Origin: Magallana gigas
Taxonomy: Eukaryota
Length of the DNA stretch: 64,000 nucleotides
Reading direction: 5' to 3'
Assembly (NCBI RefSeq): GCF_963853765.1
Contig: NC_088854.1
Span: 18,104,001-18,168,000, forward strand
The notes under the pieces were generated by a model. The model was not told the origin of the DNA and ran no database searches. It saw nothing but the letters and a program-made list of their open reading frames with translations. Every line of letters begins with the position of its first letter. The first letter of the stretch is position 1. The position numbers and the translations under genes are program-made. Shown one piece after another: positions 18,051-34,581 of the stretch.

Positions 18051-19501
18051 CAAAGACTTTCTATAGATCTTTTTAATGAATTACAAGGTGGCAGGAATTA
18101 GGATAATATACAATTATACTTGTTTAGCATACTAAATATTGTTTAGTTCAGGTTAGCTAGTTGTTTGAAATCATTTGTTTGCTAAAATGTGCATTATTTA
18201 TTCTGTTTAATCCAACATTATTAACTAAGTAAGTGTATATGTTTTACATTTAATTTTTCGTTTTATCTTGGAATGTTCATTTTCTAGTCAGGCTTGCCAG
18301 TACATGTATCATTGATTTTTCCCAAATGATTTTTTATACCATATTACTGTGTATGACAGAGCATCTATTTTTCATTAAGAAGTTTAGAATGATAACACAT
18401 GTGCATGTTACTTAATTAAGATTCAATGTCTTTCACTAAAACAATTTTATTATGGAGTAAAATGAGAGATAGACTTAAGAGTGGTAGACCCATAGTAACT
18501 GTTGTATATTTATGCAAATTAAGACTCAAAACATTGTTCTTTTAAACTTTGTTATTATAATCATTTATATGCTGAAAAGTGTAAATGAATCCTTCCAAAG
18601 TCAGTGTATGAAAGGGGATGTGAAATTAAACTGATAATGTCTTAGTGGATGAACATGTAATGGTTGTCTTCAGAGAGAATCACTTAGGGCATTAATTGTT
18701 TTATCAACATCATATTTGTGTTGTAGTTTGTATATGATTCATAAGGGTTGGTTCTTTACAGTTTTTTCTATTTAAGGTTTATTTTTATCCATGAAAAAAT
18801 TGTTGGCAATAACTTTAATATTGTACAAAATAATTGTTTTTCTCTTTGTTATTTTTAATCTTAGAATAAATTAATTGCAAACAAAATTCTTATTTCTTAA
18901 TTAACACAAACTTATTATTTCATTTTGTTGAAATACGGGCCTAGCAAAGTTTTTTGCACCTTCTACTTCATAAAAAAATCTTCAACAATGTAAATCTTTT
19001 GTAATACCTGGCCGGTAATATAAAAGTGACAAAAGTCTTACATTACAAAAATTTTATATACATGTACGTAATAATATGAATTTGTAAGACAGCTATGGTT
19101 TTGAATTCAATATATTTCATGTAACTTTTCAATTGTCATGAGATGTAAAAAATGTAGATGTATAAATGTAAGATTTAATTGTGAAGTTTGTCAGACCTCA
19201 GGACTTTGCTGTAACTGAGTTTTGCTGTACTTTGTGACAATTTTTTTTTCATAAGGTGCATGAAAGTTACATAGAAAAACGATAATCACTATGCTACACA
19301 AGTATCTGAGTCATTATGTGTGTATAGATGATTATATTTTGATGAAGCCATGTCATTTTACACATTTTGTCAGGAATAACATAAAATCAGACATTGATCA
19401 TTGCGAGTTTTCCTGCACCACTTTTTTATATAAAAATCAAAACAAGGTGATTGAGTCTATTGGAGTCATCAATAACTCTGCTGCATGTACAGGAATGTGC
19501 A

Positions 19502-22500
19502 TTAACTCTGAGGCACATACAGGTTATCAGGCACAATATTTGCATTACACAGACTGGATGAACAGCAGAAGGTGCAGGAGAAATACTCTGCCACATATCT
19601 GTTGGGATCATATCCAGAGCATTCCTGTCTGTCCGAGGTCTGATCCCACCACTGACTTTTACACTCCTTTTCTGTTGCACATCTGAAAAGGAACACAATC
19701 CCAGAGGGTTTGTTAACCAGGCTCTGAGGCCAAAAAAGTTAGACAGGCTCACTTTTGATCAAAGTCTCACTTTTCCACTATACTGTGGAATCATCATTGT
19801 TTGTGGGGGACCAATGTTCGTTGCTTTCGTGGGTAACCCTTGCCCACAAATATACATTCCTACGAATTTATATCCAATCATTTGTTTAATATTTATTAAA
19901 ATTATCCCGATTACTCTACCAACGAAATTACCTCCCAATGAAGCAGGAAAATTTTGGCTAACCACGAACATTGACCCCCAAAAACTAGAATGATTCCACA
20001 GTATATGTTCTGTGGAATCATTAGAATTTGTTGTGGCTCAATTTTTTGTGGAATTCGTGGGTAGCTCTCACCCACAAATTTACATCATTGATGAAAACAA
20101 ATTATGAAAGAGTTACTTTTGTTTCTGAAACTGAAATTACATCCCCACAAATAAGCAAAAAACCCACAATCCACGAAAATTGGCCCCCACGAATTTAAAT
20201 GATTCCACAGTCTATGCCTTTTATAATAGTGAGACTTGGATCAAAAGTAAGTTTCTCCAAGTTTGAAGACCTCAGGACGAGCACAGAATTATGACATATA
20301 CTCTCTAAACAAAAAGGATATTGCTCAAACTTCTTTGTGAGAGAAAGACACTTTTGTATACTTTATATGGCAATGAAACTGATATTGAAAAAAAAACTCG
20401 ATACCCCATCAAAGAATCATGCTTTCATTCTGAGTCTTCAGTGATTTTGATGTATGAATGAATTAGAAGCTATTAAGAGTTTGTTTCACCTGCAATCACT
20501 ACCCTTTGATGATTTTATTGGGTTAAAAAATCTGATTCTTACTTTCTATCTACTGTCCTAGATCCATCTTTATTATTCACAAGGATATTAAGGCAATACT
20601 GCTGCTCACTGGTATCACATTTCATTGGTGTAAAATACTCCTCACAGATGTAAATTGGCATACCATTACACAAATTGCAGGAGGCTAATTTGAAAAAAAG
20701 GAAAAAAACAATGAAATATGTTGCAAATATATTTTGTAATGATTGAGCATTAGTTATACTTATAGCAAAAAGGTCAGACACTTTTTAAATTTTATCATGA
20801 ACTAACACTTTTATAAAGTTTCTGCGAGTTTAGGATTCTTTAAACAAAATGCAAAGTGGCAACGATAAACAAAATAAATTTGGTTATAGATTAAATTTTT
20901 CCAAAAGCAAACAAGGTTATAATTTACAATGATAATCTTATTTTATTATCACTTTCTGAAGTTAAGTCCATAAATTTCAGTTTGTTATTAAAAAATCTGG
21001 CAGGCTTTCTAATAACTGCAGGTCTGCAGCTCCCAGTCTGAAAAAATGGGATGGACTTCCTGAATTTTTTCAGACTGGTAGCTACAGATCTGCAGCTAGC
21101 TTTCTGAATGTGAAATAAATTCATTATTCTATAGCAATTGTAATTAGCGATGTGTGATATCTTCAATATTAATATTTTTTCTAGAAGCTTTAATGCCAAG
21201 GATTTTTTGGAACTTTGTTAACTATTCCTTTGCCAAGTTGTGTGATTGTAAGAGGAAAGAAACATGAAATTCAAAATTCCTAGCATCTAGGTATGAAATT
21301 ATATTATGAAGCCTATAGGTCCTAGCTTAAAAAATTAGAATGAAAAACTTACTGGGTGGTTTTGGAGCAGTTGTTGTAGTTGTTGGGGTTGTAGTGGTTG
21401 TTGTTGGTGTAGTAGTAGTGGTTGTTGGCGTGGTGGTAGTAGTCGTTGGTGTAGTGGTTGTGGTTGTAGGTGTAGTGGTGGTGGTTGTTTGGGTGGTGGT
21501 AGTGGTTGTTGGTGTAGTTGTAGTAGTTGGCGTAGTGGTGATGGTTGTTGGTGAAGTGGTTTTTGCTGGTGTATTTGTGGTTGATTTATTGGTGGTTGGC
21601 ATATTGGTGGTTGGAATAGTGGTTGTAGTGGTTGGCTTAGTGGTAGTTGTTGGTGTAGTGGTAGTTGTTGGTGTAGTGGTTGTTGTTGGCATAGTGGTTG
21701 TTGTTGGTGTAGATGTTGTCTGTTCCGTAGAAGCTGTTGTTACTGTTGTCTCTGGTTGTGTTGTTGGTTCCATAGTTGTCATCTCTGTTGTTGGTGTAGA
21801 TGTTGTGGATTGGGGTGTTGTTGGCTCAGTTGTGGTCGTCGTTGTTGTTGTTGTCATTGGCATTGTAAAGTTTATAGATTTTGTTGTTGTTGTAGCTTGA
21901 AATGAGTAAAAATATTCATGAATAAAGCTGTTAACAGATAATCAAGAAAACAGAAGTTTAAGGTCAGACGACACGTTCCTTGAGCATCTTTTTTGTATCT
22001 CCTTGTAATAAAGAGTTCCAATAAAAAATATTAATTTTATAATTATTTTTAAAATGATTAAAATTTACTTGTATATGTCTAGATGGCCGATTGGTTAGAA
22101 CCGTGGCCGCTCACTGCCAGAAGCGTATAGGTTCTAGAGGTCGTGATTCAAAGCCCTGCCCGGCCGAGATAGAGTTCCAATATAGTGAATTTCGCTGTGC
22201 TTTATATTTATTTTTTTTTATATCAGCAATTCAAGTGTATTTTCAAGAAGATTTTGTAGGAAATTGCATTCTCTAGTATTTTGCAAAAATGCCTGGTAAG
22301 GTACCTTAATTTTTTTCAAGAAAGCTTGTCAAAGTAGTAGTAAACCATTAAAAAATTCCTGGAAAAATGTTATATAAAATTAAGGAACGTGTCGTCTGGG
22401 GTACTTGTGATATACTAGTATACTTACGACATTCATAGTTGTCAGGGAGGGATATCAGATGGTGATCTCTGTCCACAAATGCCTCCCTGTCCTTATACAC

Positions 22501-25309
22501 TACAATAGGAAGGGAAATAGTGTTTCGCATTAATGATGATTTTGTTTAAATTAGTTACATACCAACTCTTAATTTGGATTATTGTTGACATTTTCAATTT
22601 AATAAAAGTAATACAATAACAAGAGGCTCAAGAGCAATAATGCTCACCAAAGTATGATACAGCTAGATGCCCAGTATTAAGTTAGAAGATATATAAGTAT
22701 GAAATTAATTGTCAGAACAAGACACAGTGAATTTCCTAATTCTGGAATAGGCCACCATCGATGCATCAAATGTACCTTATAGATGCACAACAGATGATCG
22801 AGAGATGACTTTTTAAATATTAATGCATTTCCACAATATGATCAATAGAGATCCACCATGACAAAGGGGTAATGAATAGATTTCACAATCATTGTAAAAA
22901 CCTCCTTGCTCACTATAATCATTTAAACCAAACTCAGTTTGTCTGCTTAATATCAAGTAGAAGAGATATTTTTAAGTATTTCTTATCCTTTAGATTCTAA
23001 TCATTCTACACAATAAAGTTGACTTAAAATTTTTTGAAACGTTTCACAGACGATTAAAAAATGATTTAGGCCCAATGGACGTTTTTTAAAACTATGACAA
23101 TCTATCAAACTTTTAATCATCTTTCATTGTAACAACATCAAGATAAATTCTTACGGTCAGGGTCTTGTATATCAAAGGCGTTACACAGATCCCCTTGGCA
23201 GCACTCGGCCTTCAGCTGAATCAGATTGTTACTTCGGCGAGAGCGAAGGAGTCGCTTCCTGACGGGAGGGGTAAACTCGACCAGAGTCGGCCTCGTTGTG
23301 GAGGGCACCGCAGTGGTGGTGGTGGTAGAGGGCGCATTCTTTGTGGTGGTTTCCAGAATATTGTTTGCATGAACAGCTTTACACAACTAAGTAAATAAAA
23401 GCATTCGCTTTTCAATACTATAGTAATTACAGCCTCAACTCCCTCCCTTATAATAATAAACAATATCCAAGACATGATACAGCTGAATACGGTTACCTAA
23501 TTTTATGTGTATATAATGTCTTTATTTAATGTCTACAATCTTTCGAAACTGTACATGTTTAATGTACAAAATTCAAAATTTAAGTGGTCAAAATTAAAGG
23601 GGTAGATAATTGTGTACGTTTTTCACCTCTATTCGTTTACAGCCCTGTTGGTAGACAATGGTTGCAGACTGGTCGGGGTTGATCCTAATTTCCTGAGTCA
23701 GTAGGCACATCTAGATCAACCAATTCAGAATTCAAAATAATGTCACTCAAATTCACCGATTTTTAACGATAAAAATATCAAATTGTCAAATGACAGTGCT
23801 GTGATTCACGTGGAACTCACTTCGTCGTCCTGACAGAATGTGGTCTCGGTGCACTTGGTCGGGTCCAGAGAGTCCTGGCAAGAGTAACATCTCGTGGCAT
23901 CAGACCCAGATGATTTAACTATTGACGTAAAAAAAACATTATTTTAAGCGAATTGAATTTATTTGAATTAAGATAATTGAGAGCGAAATCCAAAAACAAT
24001 CATTTTTTACGGTATAATGTAAAACTTTACGTTGTAATTATTAAGTTTTAAACTGTAAAAAGAAATGTTTAACATTTTTGGCCCCGATCACAATTACTGT
24101 CATTTGAACAACCCATTATTATCAGTCATTTATCAGTCATCAAATATATTTTTTAAAAGTACAATAATGGCAAAAGCAGGGACGTATATACGAGTCCCTG
24201 ACAAAAGGGAACGCTTCATAATAAATATTACAAGTAATATACATTAGTTCTTAAATTAACGAATATATTGGCAGAATTTTTGCGTCACAGAACAAAAGCT
24301 TCGCTTATTTAAAAAGGTTAGGCATTAATATTATATAAAGCCTTCTTACATGTATTTCAGTTGAACGTATTATTTGCGAATCGTTTGCACCAGAACGCAA
24401 AAAATAATCTTAGTTGGCTTTTAAGTTATTTTATATTTAAATGAAAAATAAATTAAACAGCCCTTTGCTCTAACGGCAAATAATCAATCCTGTTTGTGGT
24501 CTGCAAAGTCAAAATTTTTTTTATGCTATATTGGATAATTTGTACGACTGTTTTTGTTGCTTAAGTTTCTTTGCATATGATATTTCTAGTTACTTTGTTA
24601 AGTTGCTTTTCCCATAGCGTACACTGAGAATGAGCAATTAAGAACTTTCTCCTCCATATTATGACGTACTTCTTATCGAAATATGCAATAATATCAGGTA
24701 TAACATTTATACCTTTTTTCTTTCCCAAAATAGCTACCTAACAGCGGCGCGCAATGGGTTAGAGTGGTAACTACAAATCTTTTGAGTTCGAGTCCCTGTT
24801 ACGCTTTTATAATTTTTGCAACAAATTTTAAAACATTATTCGGTCCAATATTGTTAAATCTAAAAATGTTAAACCAGTTAAAGTATTTTGTTTATAAATA
24901 GATGGAAACAAATGTCTACTTACAGTCGCACAGATCCAAGTTACAGCGGTCCTTGGTGCAGCATTCTGAGCAGTGAACGGGCCGTATCATCTGTCGCTTT
25001 GATCGCACTCTTGCTGTGTGGTTACTCCCATTGTAGCTAAACCCACTCTCTTTTTCCTTACACTGCGCAATGTGACAGATCTATTATAAAAAGAGACCTA
25101 TTAGTAAAATCAAGCGAAACAAGTAATGTAATTATATATATGATAAATACGTTAACAGAATACCACTCAACGTGTTCAAATAGCTGTCTTGTGTAGAACC
25201 TAAACATAGGCGTCGGAAGCAAATTGAAAGTGGGGGGGGGGGGGCTAGACTAATCCTCAGAAATATTGAGAAAAAAGTAATTCCCAAAATCATGAAATTC
25301 CTAATCCGT

Positions 25310-25343
<34 letters not shown>

Positions 25344-25862
25344 ATACCTATACTTTCAAAAAAAAATTACTTACCCAATATTTTTTTTTCCCATTCTTAA
25401 TCTAACTTCTCAATCTTTCGAGGTAAATTTAGGAACAATAATCTTTCCTGCGAGAAAAAGTGGGGGGGCTGAACCCTCTATCATGCTATGTTTCAAATGG
25501 TTAGGTATAACTTTGCAGCCCCCCCCCGGTTCCGACGCCTATGCTAAAATAACTCGGAACATTTAGTTCCATTCTGAATATATTTATCCACGTCTGGTAA
25601 ATCTGCACATACACATTTACCAGTGATATTACAAAGAAATTTATAAGGTTATTAAAATAGGTCCTTGGGATCTATAAATAACATTAATTACAATGGTAAC
25701 TAACCGCAGTACTCCGACAGCCGGCATTGTACTTGTAGATGTTGAGCTCCTTGCCATCGAGGACTGTTATCTCTGAGTATTTGTCTAGAAAGCAGTACTG
25801 CAAAAAAGGTGGTTACTATCATTGAGCAATCCTAGTATGCATCTCTCTCTCTCTCCCTCCCT

Positions 25863-25930
<68 letters not shown>

Positions 25931-26980
25931 GAGAGAGAGAATCCAACAGAACATTGCACAGAGAAACAGATTGACCACCAAAGATGAGGTTTTATTCCGC
26001 ATTTTGAAAAAATGTTTTTGTATTTAAAAAAAACTATTTTCAGACATTCGGTTGCAATTCTTGTACATGGTATAAAATTCGACAAAACCATATTTTTTAT
26101 CTTGTTTTTCATAATGTTCGAGGAGATTTAGTCAACCCTTTTTGTCTGTCCCAAAGTGTTGGCGATATGAATTCATACTCAGTACCTGGCCGGGAGCACA
26201 GCTTATCTCGTCAATGCAGGAATCGGCCGTATCCACATCGTTGCAGAACATGCACTTGAGATACGATCTTGATCTGGTGGAATTCACATTGCTTGTTGCT
26301 GGCGCCGACTCTAGTCCCCCGAAAAGGGAAATAAATTAGTATAAAGCGACTGTCCAAATTAATACTCCTTCAAATGAATTGAAAATTAAATAAAAAACAT
26401 AACAGGAAATAGAATTAGCAACTGTATACATGTAGGCTGTACAGATACATAACTAACTGTATACCATGAAATTGGATTAAATTCATTCGGTGCTTATATT
26501 AATAAAATTTTAACTCTGTGTCGTCACAAACTTAACAAGGCTGGATGGTAAACAAATCAACCATTATACCTATCTTAGAACTGTCTTCTTAGTCATACAC
26601 ATTTACATGTATTTGATATAGAATAAAATCAGATATTTCAAATATTTTTATAGACTTTATATCGAAGTCGGTTTTATTCGAAAGAAAAATATTTCATATT
26701 TCTAGCAGTTATTTCTCTATTACTATATAGTATCTTAATATCCAAGTTGATATTGATTTCTGTTAAATCACTATTTTAAACAAGGAAATCCTACTCTTGA
26801 AAGTGTAAAGTGTATACTTGTTAGTTGACAATCAAACAGCAAATAAATACCATATGCATATACAAAGTAGTTAATTCAAACGAAAATATTTACCTCCGAA
26901 TCCATAAAAGTTTATTACTGGCAAAACAAGGACTAAAAAGAACAAAAAAATAACAAATAATCCAGATGATAAACAAACAT
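19502..26980 (-). CDS. Secreted multi-domain Ly6/uPAR (three-finger) protein with Thr/Pro mucin segment, about 598 aa
   Basis: Exons in transcript order: 26980-26894 (signal peptide, one base out of frame, see findings), 26310-26186, 25797-25705, 25062-24924, 23918-23821, 23710-23627, 23386-23155, 22499-22428, 21895-21353, 20684-20543, 19682-19502 (TAA). All GT-AG and phase-compatible from exon 2 on. Three Cys frameworks start CxxC and end CCxxxxCN (CCTKDRCN, CCQGDLCN, CCSSSLCN). One 543-nt exon encodes PTTTT repeats. Confidence 0.85.
19783..20210. mobile_element. Two adjacent MITEs (19783-20001, 20010-20210) with CTGTGGAATCAT TIRs
   Basis: Each starts CTGTGGAATCAT and ends ATGATTCCACAG; both lie in the last intron of the three-finger gene. 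Confidence 0.75.
21965..22398. mobile_element. MITE-like element with perfect 17-bp TIR and tRNA-like core
   Basis: CAGACGACACGTTCCTT (21965-21981) versus AAGGAACGTGTCGTCTG (22382-22398); internal AGATGGCCGATTGGTTAGAACC...GTGATTCAAAGCCC. Confidence 0.65.
25205..25543. mobile_element. MITE with CATAGGCGTCGGAA TIR and poly-G/poly-C tracts
   Basis: CATAGGCGTCGGAA ... TTCCGACGCCTATG, flanked on both sides by CTAAA. Confidence 0.75.
25842..25930. repeat. (CT)n / (CCCT)n microsatellite
   Basis: Direct reading. Confidence 0.95.
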
Positions 26981-29459
26981 GGTTTCTGAAATACGTAATG
27001 TAGTTTTTTTTTAACAACAGTGTTTAGAGACATTTTGATTTACAAACATACCCTCTTTAAACCTTTTTTTCTTGCAACTGTATTATATAACCCATAGCTA
27101 TTCAAATCTGATAATTTTTGAGTAACAATCTATAATATATGCAAATTAAATATCCTATTGGATATTCATAACTTGATGATCAACAGTATGGCGGAAATGA
27201 CTACTTAAACTTGTTTTTAAGATTTCTGCCAACCTGATTATAAGACAGTATCATCATTACATTTTAATTGTACCTGTATCAATAGATATTACGATGTGTT
27301 TTATTTTTTTTAATACTTACAATATGTAAACAATTTAATATCCATCTCACATTACAGGTCTTTAATGTTCCCCAAATTCTTTAGAATTCTTGGTAGTCCG
27401 AATTAATGTCCTCCTTGTGATAAGAAAAACGTAACAACCTCACAAGGTCGAAATTTTATTTGACCTGTTCCTGTTGAACACTGTTCTTTTATATGGGCAT
27501 ATAGTGCAATGTACGGTTTTTGTTGAGTATATTCTATCAATCAGTTTTGATGTTTGATGTTACAAAATGTGATTAATTTCAAAACTATTGCAATTGTCTT
27601 GACAGGTTTTTAGACTAACAAAGTTGTGTAAGCCTTTAAGCGTCAATCATAGAAACTCGTTCTTAAAAACGGGACTAGATACTCTGGTAAAGACGTGTTG
27701 ATTCTGTTTACACAATAACTTCATCATCATTCTCCACAAACAATTCAACCTTTGCGAACCAGTGCCACAGTACTACGAGAAATCTCTACCCTTAGACAGG
27801 GCCATTGCATTCTAGAGATGCTGCGATATTAAAGAATGTCACATATCAAACGCCCGGATCTAGCGATTATATATAGAGTTGTGTGTGTCAAAACTTTGTC
27901 TGAGCAGTTCCATTTACTGACAAGAAGATCTATTGATGTCAAACGTAATCAGCCTCTTCAGATGTGTAAAGTGGTTATAGGCTCAGGTAAAAGGGGGGCG
28001 CGTTACTGAAGAGGTTTGCCCGCACTAACCAAATCGCAAAACCATGATTGAATTTAACAAAAGGTTTTAACAATATGCCAATTTTTTTTCAATCATTTTT
28101 GAATTTTCTTCTCAGTAATGTGAGAATACTCTAGAAATTTTGACAATTTTTTTATACGAGTAAAACTTTTTGCTCTCAACCCTCATGGTACGTCACTGCA
28201 GAACTCTAACTCTCCAGGAAAATTGAATTTGTATTGTCCTTCAGTGTCAAACACTTACACAGGCTCTGTTACGATATCAGAGATATATATCGACAAATGA
28301 AACATGCATTTATTTGTAATGACTTTTAAAAATAGTTTTTACATATATCTGATATTACTCTACGGTCTGGCAACCGAGTTGATCGTTCAAAAGTGACAAC
28401 TTTCCTCCAACTGAAAAGTACATGTATACCCATCTTCGGAAACCTATTTCTATCTCACTTCAATGATCATGGGCTAGCTGTCTGAATTATTTTTCTCGTC
28501 TTTACAAATAATTCATATTGTATTCCGATTGGTTCCTTCCCATTTTCATGAAGGAAATCCCTCATATCATGTTAGTGTTTACAAATGCATCTATCAACAA
28601 CGGTATGTTTTCACAACATCCACATAATTATAATTGTTGCTTTCATACCGCAAAAATATGAAGAATGCAATAGGTGAAATGAGTAGGCATGATATTCATG
28701 AGAACGAGAAAAATTCAGTAGGTTGGTGCACAGTCAGTAAGCGTACGCAAGACCGACCGTGGCGGGTTTCCGACGAGTCATGCATGGTATCCTATTGCTA
28801 CATTACTAGCATGTTCCAGGTGGAGGCATCAAAGCTTCTCAGCAGTGTTAACTGCAATCTAGAGGCAAGGAACAACCCGGAAGAGCAAACTAGGCGAGCG
28901 ACTAACTATTTTTATTGTGGTTCATCAGAAAAAACGGTAGTGGGTATGTTGAAAATTTTAAAAATACTCCCATCAGAAATTCATGCACCCTCACCCCACG
29001 TGCAATAATCGCTTTCTTCAAAGCCAGTATGAACTACCTAAAATCTATTTTCCTGTTTATATTAACACCTCTAATATTATTTATTGAATGTTTATAAAAC
29101 ACACGTGCTACAAATTATATACTACATGTATATTTAGTAACAACTGACAAATTTCTCTGACGGAAATGCCAAAACACGCGTATTTATCACGTTTAGTGCA
29201 GAGCATATTTGAACAATTTTAAATATGAAGTAAGGTATGTATTTGAATAAATATTGATCAACGATAAAGAAATCATAACTCAATTCAAGAAAGGTGAACA
29301 ATTTGAAGGGGTGTTCCAACATGTATATGCATGTACACAGAATTTCACATGAAAATTTCCGATGATAAATTTTTTCTCACATTATGTCTCTTTTAATCTA
29401 GACTGGTTGTATTTAACCCCCCCCCCCCCCCCAACCCCCAATCACACCCATTCCCTCTT

Positions 29460-31736: not shown

Positions 31737-34581
31737 ATGTTGCTCTCCATGAACAGAGAATTCCGTCTCTTCTTCAAAAGGAGAAAAAAGAGAATATTGC
31801 AAATTCTGGTATTTAGGACTTATTATTTAAAACAAGGTTTATTAACCAAATCAACTAAAAGGAAAATTAAAAAAATAACCTGTAATGTTAATTTCATTTG
31901 TAAAATTTTTAAAACTAATGAAAGAGACTTTTGAAAATAACGTTGAAATTAACTTTGAAGTACACATTAATTTTGAAAATCTGGATAAAAAAAAAAGAAT
32001 ATTTTCCTTTGTGTTGCACTGCATATGTGTGGGCATCACTACAAGTACAAGTTTAGCACATTCAATCTTTTTTTTCAGTGTTGCGGATTGGACAAGGAGA
32101 TAATGACTGCCATATACCTGTGCTCTTTCCTTGTTGCCTCTCTTTTTCTGGTGATTTGGCAGCTAAGTCGAGACAAATGTCATACAGAAAAAGTGGTCAA
32201 ACAGTTGGTTAGTAGCACATTCATACAAGGATTTTGTTTTTTGAGCCGTTTGGAATAATCTTGAAATTTATTTTAATTTACCAGTAGATCCTGTTGTAAC
32301 GAGCACATCTATGAATTACAGCAGTAAATCTACATCTGGCATGTTTGTTTAGTCATGCATGTACCATTTTTTTAAAGTGGCTTTCAATTGATGGAAAAAA
32401 ATTATTACAATTTTATGAGGTGTGCAGTATATAATTTTTTATGATCATCACTATAAAGCCATTTATTTAACTAAAACACTACTTCCAGTGTCAGGACTAT
32501 AAAGAGGGCCAAATAGCTGGTTCATGGTGCCATGCTCTTTGTGTAGATGAAATTGTGCAACTCCACAGCTGTCATCATCAAAATGGTCCATTACTGGTAT
32601 GTAATAAAAACAAGTCACAAGTACTATATAATGTGTTGATACTGATATGTAATGGAAATGCCTGCATGGTTGACATTTTCATTGCAATCAATTTTTAATG
32701 AAATGTATTTATAAGAGGGACGGAAACCTTTGTGTATATAGGAGTGTACTTTGACCTTACCCCTTATTTGACTTAGAAATTCATTTATGGACATGCTTTT
32801 CCCTTATATTACTAACAAACACTCCAAGGGTAAAGAGCTAAGGGATAAAAATGCACAAAACTTAATAAGAACAGCTGTTGGACAAAAGCTATCAAAAGTA
32901 CATGGCTATGTACATGTTTGATTAACTGACTGATCACTATTGCGAATCTACAGAACAAGGTTCTGCAGTTAAAGGGTTTTGATTAAACCATAATGCACAG
33001 TTAGTAGATAGGCCCTATCTATTAGCATGTGTATGGTACATGTACTATTTAAAACTTCCAAATCTAATCATTCTGTAGGGCACATTTACATTAGAACTGT
33101 TTTTGTAGTGGACATTTTTTTAAAAATAATTTTCCATGACTACAGATCTTAAAATTATCACTGTCATCCATGTGAATAATTCATACTTACTCATAAAACT
33201 ATTTTGAACTTTTTCTTTTTCTGCAATCCATACCCACATGCAAATACTTTGTTACATAAAAATCTGTATATAGACTCATAAGGGTTAAATGCTTTTTTTC
33301 AGACATTCCAATATGAAGACACAGTTGTCAAACTACCTCATTCTTACAAGACTTCTCTACCACATTCCCACCTTCCTGAACCATTGTCAATGAAGCAGTT
33401 CCATGATATGCTACACAAATTTCTGCATTCCAAACTAGGAAAAGTTGACTTTTCTAGGTTGTTACAAAAGATTGACAAATATGCTGACTTCAATAACAAT
33501 GGGCAGGTAAGAAAATTTCTATGAATGATGGTTTTAAATTTTTGCTATCGGTACTTTGCTTTTACATTTAAACAAGATGAAACTTTATGTGGAATTTATC
33601 TGAGGTATGAAAGATTGTTGGGGAATATAGCATGTAATATTTCTGAAGAATTATATGGATCATTTTGAATATATGCCTTGCAGTTTAGGATATAAACTGC
33701 TTCTACTGTATGAAGAAGTAAAAAAATGTTTTACATATCTACTCTCAAGATTTATTAACATTGCATTATCATTGCAGTTAACCTATGGGGAAGCAAACTC
33801 AATGTGGCAACTTCTCAACATCCATGAGTTTTTCATACTTTTTATCTTTGATGGAGATCCAATATTTCCCCTGAAAAATGGCACTTGTGGGCCGATGTAT
33901 GCCTATCAGCACATGAAAGCCAGTCCTCTATTTAACAAGCACAACAAGACGTTTTTGGATAATTTTTTCTCAAACACATATCGATGGATGTTCCCCTCAT
34001 GGGACAAGCGAGTTAATGTGGCAGTGGGGTTGCTAGAATATGGCATTACATTTTCTGAGACCTACAATTCAAAGTTCTACATGTGTGATTATGTGGAGCA
34101 GTGTTTTGGCTATACACAGCAGTATGAAGTTAGTTTAGTTTCTTTTGAAAACATTATGTCAGAACACATGATAGGGAATATTCTAGAGGAAAAGAAGTGT
34201 TCAAAAGACTCACATTGCCAATATCAAAATCTTTGTCATTCACTGTGCAATAAAAAGATAGGACGCTGTACTAATGAAGTTAGGGGACCATCTCAAACTT
34301 CCGTTTGTGAAGTACTTAGAGATTATGTTTTGTTTGATGCACCAGCTCCTGTACAAGCAAACCTGCATGATTTGTTAAGGAAATGTGATAGAATAGGTCA
34401 GAAAATTGATAAAACGGGGAACAATGTTGAGTTGAATCAGCTGAATGTTTGGTACAACACAGTTTTGTTTGACATCCAGGAACTTCTATGGGATAAAATA
34501 AAAAACAAACCTGCTAACTGGCTCCATCCACCCAAGCCAAAGAAAAAGCCCAAAACACATCCCAAGAACACTGGTCAATAA
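31737..34581 (+). CDS. DIPK1: Divergent protein kinase domain 1 (DIPK1/FAM69 family), 5 coding exons, 438 aa
   Basis: Exons 31737-31808, 32079-32207, 32489-32596, 33303-33506, 33778-34581; all phase 0, GT-AG, 1317 nt. Basic N-terminus plus TM (IYLCSFLVASLFLVIW), Cys motif CQDYKEGQIAGSWCHALC, EF-hand-like ADFNNNGQLTYGEA, PSWDKRVNVAVGLLE, YMCD and a C-terminal Cys cluster, all matching the FAM69 architecture. Confidence 0.9.

Follow-up and report, generated by a model that had tools for sequence, protein, structure and literature searches.

The DNA analysed here is a 64,000-nucleotide stretch of the Pacific oyster Magallana gigas (contig NC_088854.1, positions 18,104,001 to 18,168,000), referred to as the window. 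This AT-rich animal DNA contains an 11-exon gene on the minus strand (19502-27033) that encodes a protein with three Ly6/uPAR (LU) domains and a mucin stalk. The predicted product is a soluble, heavily O-glycosylated glycoprotein of the order LU-LU-mucin-LU, in which the third finger loops of domains 1 and 2 each carry a match to R-x-K/R-R, the furin consensus. Judged from sequence, there is about an even chance that a convertase nicks the protein in both of these loops and that the resulting chains remain joined by disulfides. The architecture itself is solid, and the nick is a well-motivated hypothesis on which the balance lies close to level.

From the N terminus, the protein consists of a hydrophobic leader (...LFVIFLFFLVLVLPVINFYGFG), LU domains 1 and 2, a linker with a single cysteine, the mucin stalk, LU domain 3, and the tail NIVPDNLYVPQS. 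Each of the three domains follows the LU cysteine framework (C-x2-C ... CC-x4-CN, with 8-10 consensus cysteines), so that the three frameworks and the mucin region recognized in the initial annotation are borne out. Domain 1 has 13 cysteines (10 consensus plus three), domain 2 has 10 and domain 3 has 12 (10 plus two), and the mature part has 36. Just three CC-x4-CN domain ends were found across the window, each within this gene on the minus strand (19502-25080). The stalk spans 181 residues, 64% Thr and 14% Pro, and is encoded by degenerate tandem repeats of 15-21 bases. The strongly hydrophobic stretch encoded by exon 1, with ...NFYGFG at its end, is joined to exon 2 in RNA and is the sole hydrophobic segment of the protein.

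At the other end, domain 3 closes with ...CNANIVPDNLYVPQS and the stop codon at 19502-19504, 13 residues after the last CN. No glycosylphosphatidylinositol (GPI)-attachment signal was found there: the C terminus has no hydrophobic segment, with a maximum 15-residue hydropathy of 1.1 in the last 40 residues, and the orthologs have the same ending without a hydrophobic tail. The earlier claim that domain 3 lacks a GPI-type tail thus holds.

Orthologs with the full architecture are present in Saccostrea cucullata (P0002, 606 residues) and S. echinata (P0112, 653 residues), both named ‘mucin-2-like,’ and in the scallop Argopecten irradians (XP_069122577.1; P0014, 391 residues). All are computer-predicted proteins, ~47-79% identical to the window exons. 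They share the order of two LU domains, linker cysteine, mucin and 12-Cys LU domain as well as the C-terminal tail, and their basic motifs occupy equivalent places in the loops. In the Argopecten ortholog, unlike the oyster protein, the third loop of domain 2 is free of the Thr insert and the domain 1 motif is reduced to GKR.

Translation places the two motifs as follows, each in a third-finger loop, as initially annotated:

24994-25005, minus strand: RSKR motif of domain 1 (full RVRSKR/QM; context NHTARVRSKRQMIRPVH)
23234-23245, minus strand: RSRR motif of domain 2 (full RKRLLRSRR/SN; context TPPVRKRLLRSRRSNNLIQL)

RVRSKR is the extended R-x-R-x-K-R form. It had been assigned to the loop after the seventh cysteine of domain 1, and only the loop assignment stands: because RNA uses the upstream acceptor at 25080, domain 1 gains its full 13 cysteines and the motif falls between the eighth and ninth. 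An alternative in-frame acceptor within exon 4 (GCGCAG/TGT) was discarded on the same grounds. The Thr-rich insert followed by RKRLLRSRR in the equivalent loop of domain 2 is found in exon 7 as described, within a third loop of 58 residues. By chance, 0.15 occurrences of R-x-[KR]-R would be expected in the 399 non-mucin residues, and the probability that both third loops carry one is ~2e-4.

Loss of these sites in orthologs had been named beforehand as grounds for rejecting the proposal, and the comparison favors it. Both sites are retained in the two Saccostrea species and the second in the scallop; the first is reduced there. At the domain 1 position, RSKR of this oyster is RSRR in S. cucullata and RSKR in S. 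echinata, and at the domain 2 position RSRR is RYRR in both Saccostrea and RRRR in Argopecten. Two oyster paralogs on C1 have RKKR at the homologous position (IIGRKKR right before the LU domain end). Among 14 domain-1/2-type instances, which are few and related sequences, nine contain R-x-[KR]-R, four GKR, and one neither. The residues flanking the motif vary between species while its core stays (RKRLL in oyster versus LFRSLG in Saccostrea). As a control, loop 3 of domain-3-type LU domains contained R-x-[KR]-R in none of 75 cases and any dibasic pair in six of the 75. The oyster genome has at least six convertase P-domain loci. A convertase nick in the third loops is plausible in view of these comparisons, and we expect it about as readily as its absence.

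The basic clusters could also be left uncut and serve as conserved binding patches on the third fingers of a single-chain LU-mucin protein, contacting, for instance, microbial surfaces, mineral, or glycans that are sulfated or sialylated. Third fingers of LU domains are typical ligand-contact loops, several homologs have GKR only and thus no furin consensus, and glycan sequons flank the sites. However, it is the exact R-x-[KR]-R spacing that is kept and not the surrounding charges, whereas a patch would tolerate shuffling of Lys and Arg. We regard uncut binding patches as unlikely, though with a chance large enough to be taken seriously.

In the mechanism that we propose, a furin-like proprotein convertase would cut both third loops during passage through the secretory pathway, after RVRSKR in that of domain 1 and after RSRR in that of domain 2. 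The LU consensus disulfide pairing, as established for CD59, is 1-5, 2-3, 4-6, 7-8 and 9-10. Under this pairing both third loops would be closed by Cys7-Cys8, and that of domain 1 by an extra loop disulfide as well. Because the motifs lie between cysteines that are bonded across the loop in this scheme, a cut would leave the chains linked. The nicked product would consist of as many as three chains held together covalently, and its opened third fingers and stalk would present a binding surface. By extension, there may be a bivalve-wide LU subfamily built for convertase nicking in a disulfide-closed third finger, with two- or three-chain modules on a secreted mucin stalk and with cleavage, perhaps tuned by glycans, switching the binding state of the finger. 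This wider proposal is more tentative, and its chances fall somewhat short of even.

A different outcome of the same cuts would be that the pieces are set free, one or two N-terminal LU modules leaving the mucin-domain 3 part in the manner of a pro-protein. The motif evidence is the same in either case, and the disulfide pairing that would hold the chains together rests on consensus. Nevertheless, Cys7 and Cys8 flank both loops in every ortholog, and the extra cysteine after domain 1 and that of the linker exon are conserved and would add another bridge, making release decidedly improbable. Both odd cysteines are also found in the orthologs from Saccostrea and the scallop and may therefore be bonded to each other.

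Several observations weigh against a disulfide-joined nicked product. GKR without Arg at P4 is found in scallop domain 1, in the S. echinata protein P0004 (GKRK) and in Mytilus, and the single-domain Saccostrea paralog P0140 has no dibasic pair. The conserved motif instances are not independent, because they are few and phylogenetically related. Two N-glycosylation sequons (NGS and NHT) lie directly upstream of RSKR, and N-glycans at these positions, as well as O-glycans near RSRR, could block the convertase. An AlphaFold model of domains 1 and 2, built on an alignment of 11 rows, has an overall predicted local distance difference test (pLDDT) score of 47 and is not confident for domain 2 or for either third finger, nor is it a reliable guide to a disulfide between the domains. 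Because of the poor quality of this model, we infer loop exposure and disulfide closure rather than reading them from coordinates. Two features of the 5′ end, considered below with the start codon, point the same way.

Both motif-bearing loops have a pLDDT below 40 in this shallow-alignment model, which is consistent with flexible, exposed third loops. Residues 1-60 of the domain 1 model, comprising fingers 1 and 2, are predicted with a pLDDT of 85-94 and match GPIHBP1 (Z 5.4), TEX101, CD177, PSCA, Lynx1 and CD59 with Z scores of 3.7-5.4. Domain 3 was modeled on the Saccostrea ortholog from a 60-row alignment of domain-3-type sequences, with a pLDDT of 93. In Foldseek searches with this model, all of the top 50 PDB matches and all of the top 30 Swiss-Prot matches were three-finger proteins, among them LYPD6, BMPR-IA, uPAR, LYPD1, Drosophila cold and snake toxins. 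By these models, domain 3 and fingers 1 and 2 of domain 1 have the three-finger fold.

Pfam searches with single exons of the window gave sub-threshold three-finger matches of 14-17 bits, so the full-length orthologs were used instead. With UPAR_LY6, domain 1 of the scallop ortholog scored 26.7 bits against a cut-off of 24.8 and domain 2 of Saccostrea scored 24.0 bits, and with UPAR_LY6_2 domain 3 gave a weak match of 17. In P0002, no VWD or cystine-knot domain was found by Pfam at E up to 1, where UPAR_LY6 and New_glue were the only families listed. The name ‘mucin-2-like’ thus reflects composition only.

The gene model was read from splice sites and phases and then amended by RNA and ortholog data. 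It has GT-AG at every border and consistent phases, and the joined exons form a single open frame of 616 codons. The exons, all on the minus strand, are as follows, with the RNA junctions or other evidence that define them:

26894..27033: exon 1, leader exon; only its 3′ end (26894) is fixed; donor GAG/gtaaat; the LU frame encodes ...SSGLFVIFLFFLVLVLPVINFYGFG
27004..27012: A9 homopolymer, downstream of the ATG at 27033 and ahead of the hydrophobic leader
26186..26310: exon 2, domain 1 Cys 1-4 (...YLKCMFCNDVDTADSCIDEISCAPGQ); junction 25797/26186, loose contig end at 26312
25705..25797: exon 3, second finger of domain 1 (Cys 5-6); junctions 25080/25705 and 25797/26186 (X1, X3, X4 and X20)
24924..25080: exon 4, third finger of domain 1, CC-x4-CN end and one further Cys (CNLDLCD); junctions 23918/24924 and 25080/25705
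23821..23918: exon 5, domain 2 Cys 1-4; junctions 23710/23821 and 23918/24924
23627..23710: exon 6, second finger of domain 2 (Cys 5-6); junctions 23386/23627 and 23710/23821
23155..23386: exon 7, domain 2 Cys 7, third loop with Thr-rich insert, and CC-x4-CN end; junctions 22499/23155 and 23386/23627
22428..22499: exon 8, 72-base linker exon with one Cys (LYKDREAFVDRDHHLISLPDNYEC; ...HLISLPDNYEC); junctions 21895/22428 and 22499/23155
21353..21895: exon 9, mucin exon encoding 181 residues (116 Thr, 26 Pro); junctions 20684/21353 and 21895/22428
20543..20684: exon 10, domain 3 Cys 1-5; junction 20684/21353 in all four runs
19502..19682: exon 11, domain 3 Cys 6-12, tail and stop; splice phase, acceptor and colinearity with ortholog P0002

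RNA was mapped on 20560-26559, using contig sets from three studies (X1, X3 and X4) and the raw-read run X20, which contributes a few reads over junctions. All junctions predicted within this stretch were recovered, with CT..AC ends on the plus strand, equivalent to GT..AG for a minus-strand gene. Nine of the 10 splice junctions are seen in the RNA contigs of the three runs. The remaining one, between exons 10 and 11 (20543 to 19682), lies outside the mapped stretch and is based on splice phase, domain completeness and colinearity with P0002.

The X3 and X4 contigs continue past 26312 into sequence identical to 26896-26925, and the end of exon 1 was placed at 26894 for this reason. Hence the gene does not begin at 26310, as previously taken; that position is the exon 2 acceptor, and the hydrophobic leader is in the exon upstream. 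Exon 8 had likewise been overlooked, together with exon 1, in a gene whose LU domains and mucin exon were otherwise correctly identified; it is homologous to residues 302-322 of P0002. Two other candidates for the 5′ region, a signal-peptide exon at 31897 and a mini-intron immediately upstream of exon 2, were dropped because the contigs connect 26312 to 26896.

Nine runs recorded as RNA contain 22-37% of the words sampled from 19400-26900, approximately the exon share, and word depth over the gene is high in three runs. In X20, exon bins from 23160 upward are covered by pairs with the first mate on the plus strand, which fits minus-strand RNA, given a library of the usual stranded kind. All RNA contig runs differ from the reference by G>A at 23660 and T>C at 21459, both at third codon positions. 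The former is silent, with Thr kept (ACC to ACT), and the latter is probably silent too.

The start codon is insecure. RNA contigs reach 211-255 bases past the exon 1/2 junction, and the LU frame is closed just upstream of the exon 1 leader. The sole ATG nearby, at 27033-27031, is one base out of the leader/LU frame, and the assembly has no in-frame ATG. The context of this ATG is good (AAAATGT), and there is a TATA-like element at 27081-27089. If the A9 run consisted of eight A's, the ATG would come into frame with the whole protein. The shift at 27004-27033 could reflect a length difference of assembly or allele, or else an unseen upstream coding exon. The Saccostrea gene model is laid out differently at the 5′ end, with a 25-base first coding exon and a leader continuous with the following exon, and did not settle the matter as a guide to the oyster start codon. 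In the oyster, the stretch adjoining exon 2 that is similar to the Saccostrea leader contains a stop.

No Pacific-oyster protein corresponding to domains 1 and 2 was found in the protein collection among entries of 333-1060 and 100-317 residues; the searches yielded nothing beyond the two Saccostrea orthologs and a single paralog. The gene may for this reason be unannotated or annotated as non-coding. These facts, namely the frame of the ATG, the closed frame upstream of the leader, the stop in the leader-like stretch and the missing protein entry, are also what one would expect of a 5′-defective or decaying allele in this individual or assembly, transcribed but giving no full protein. Against such decay stand the 616 open downstream codons, the precise splicing with high word depth in three RNA runs, and the confinement of both exonic RNA differences to third codon positions. 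A one-base difference in A9 or an unseen upstream exon would, moreover, account for the frame problem. We consider a decaying allele improbable.

In X20, which consists of poly(A) raw reads, intron 1 is covered on the gene's strand within 26360-26559 to a mean depth of 1.43, compared with 1.86 for exon 2 and ~0 for the other introns; intron 1 may thus be retained in this sample, or an alternative start used.

Exon 4 is single-copy in the oyster genome, whereas at least 24 copies of the domain-3 exon type were counted there. Each of two tandem paralogs on C1 (67366200-67376199, L007; 67386400-67396399, L006) consists of an LU domain followed by a 12-Cys LU domain and is orthologous to the LU-mucin-domain 3 protein P0004 (S. 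echinata LOC133174527). An exhaustive search with the last exon returned 111 cluster representatives. The named ones are all molluscan, and in most of them the 12-Cys domain ends a Thr/Ser/Pro-rich protein. By sequence comparison, the 12-Cys domain-3 type is widespread at the ends of molluscan mucin-like proteins. Examples are the Haliotis ‘integumentary mucin C.1-like’ protein and M. gigas LOC105320250, which have this type (W..TSD..C..CxxCC....CN..P...LY) at or near the C terminus after Thr/Ser/Pro stretches but, unlike the gene described here, are without the domain-1/2 type that bears the basic loop motifs. In the 60-sequence alignment of domain-3-type sequences (A3), a post-CN tail, (I/L/V)-P-x3-(T)-L-Y, is common to gastropods and bivalves, with a nearly invariant Pro, and usually lies no more than ~10 residues from the C terminus.

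Among vertebrate proteins, human C4.4A (LYPD3) is the nearest analogue in layout. Another is uPAR (PLAUR), which has three LU domains in one chain and is regulated by proteolysis. Unlike the oyster protein, uPAR is GPI-anchored and lacks a mucin stalk, and the cleavage known for it takes place between domains 1 and 2, in the linker, rather than in a disulfide-closed finger. To our knowledge, neither C4.4A nor uPAR is cut inside a finger. In C4.4A, a pair of LU domains is combined with a mucin-type region and a GPI anchor, and the paper describing this protein mentions no convertase motif within an LU loop (PMC7053344). It differs from the oyster protein by its anchor and by the lack of a third LU domain after the stalk.

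Cleavage inside a folded module with retention of the pieces has precedents in the furin-cut S1 site of Notch and the self-cleaved SEA domain of MUC1, the latter also on a mucin stalk. Both are analogies only, as the folds are unrelated and the pieces are held non-covalently, in contrast to the disulfides proposed here. Molluscs have ~83 LU proteins per genome, with functions unknown, and a 2026 survey of invertebrate LU proteins lists unusual molluscan architectures with no mention of mucin-linked forms or convertase sites (PMC13719153). Full-text literature searches gave no account of an LU finger being cut internally by a convertase, and nothing specific on LU domains combined with furin or with mucin in molluscs.

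Few extracellular binding modules are as common in animals as the LU domain. Should the nick be real, it would be a new mode of maturation for the LU fold, one not described, according to these searches, for any Ly6/uPAR protein. It would also open to experimental tests a highly transcribed oyster glycoprotein, secreted or at the surface, which may matter for mucus, for contacts between host and microbes or for building the shell. As the gene is apparently missing from oyster protein sets, its product would be overlooked in proteomic searches.

A few further features of the window were recorded. Two intronic stretches, 21960-22360 and 25160-25560, show very high RNA word depth, reads from both strands and many loose ends, and are probably copies of transposons transcribed elsewhere. 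A run of 33 G's is present at 25310-25342 and a (TCTC)n array at 25842-25930. Finally, tblastn gave a pair of duplicate weak matches in the window, at 44721 and 52030.

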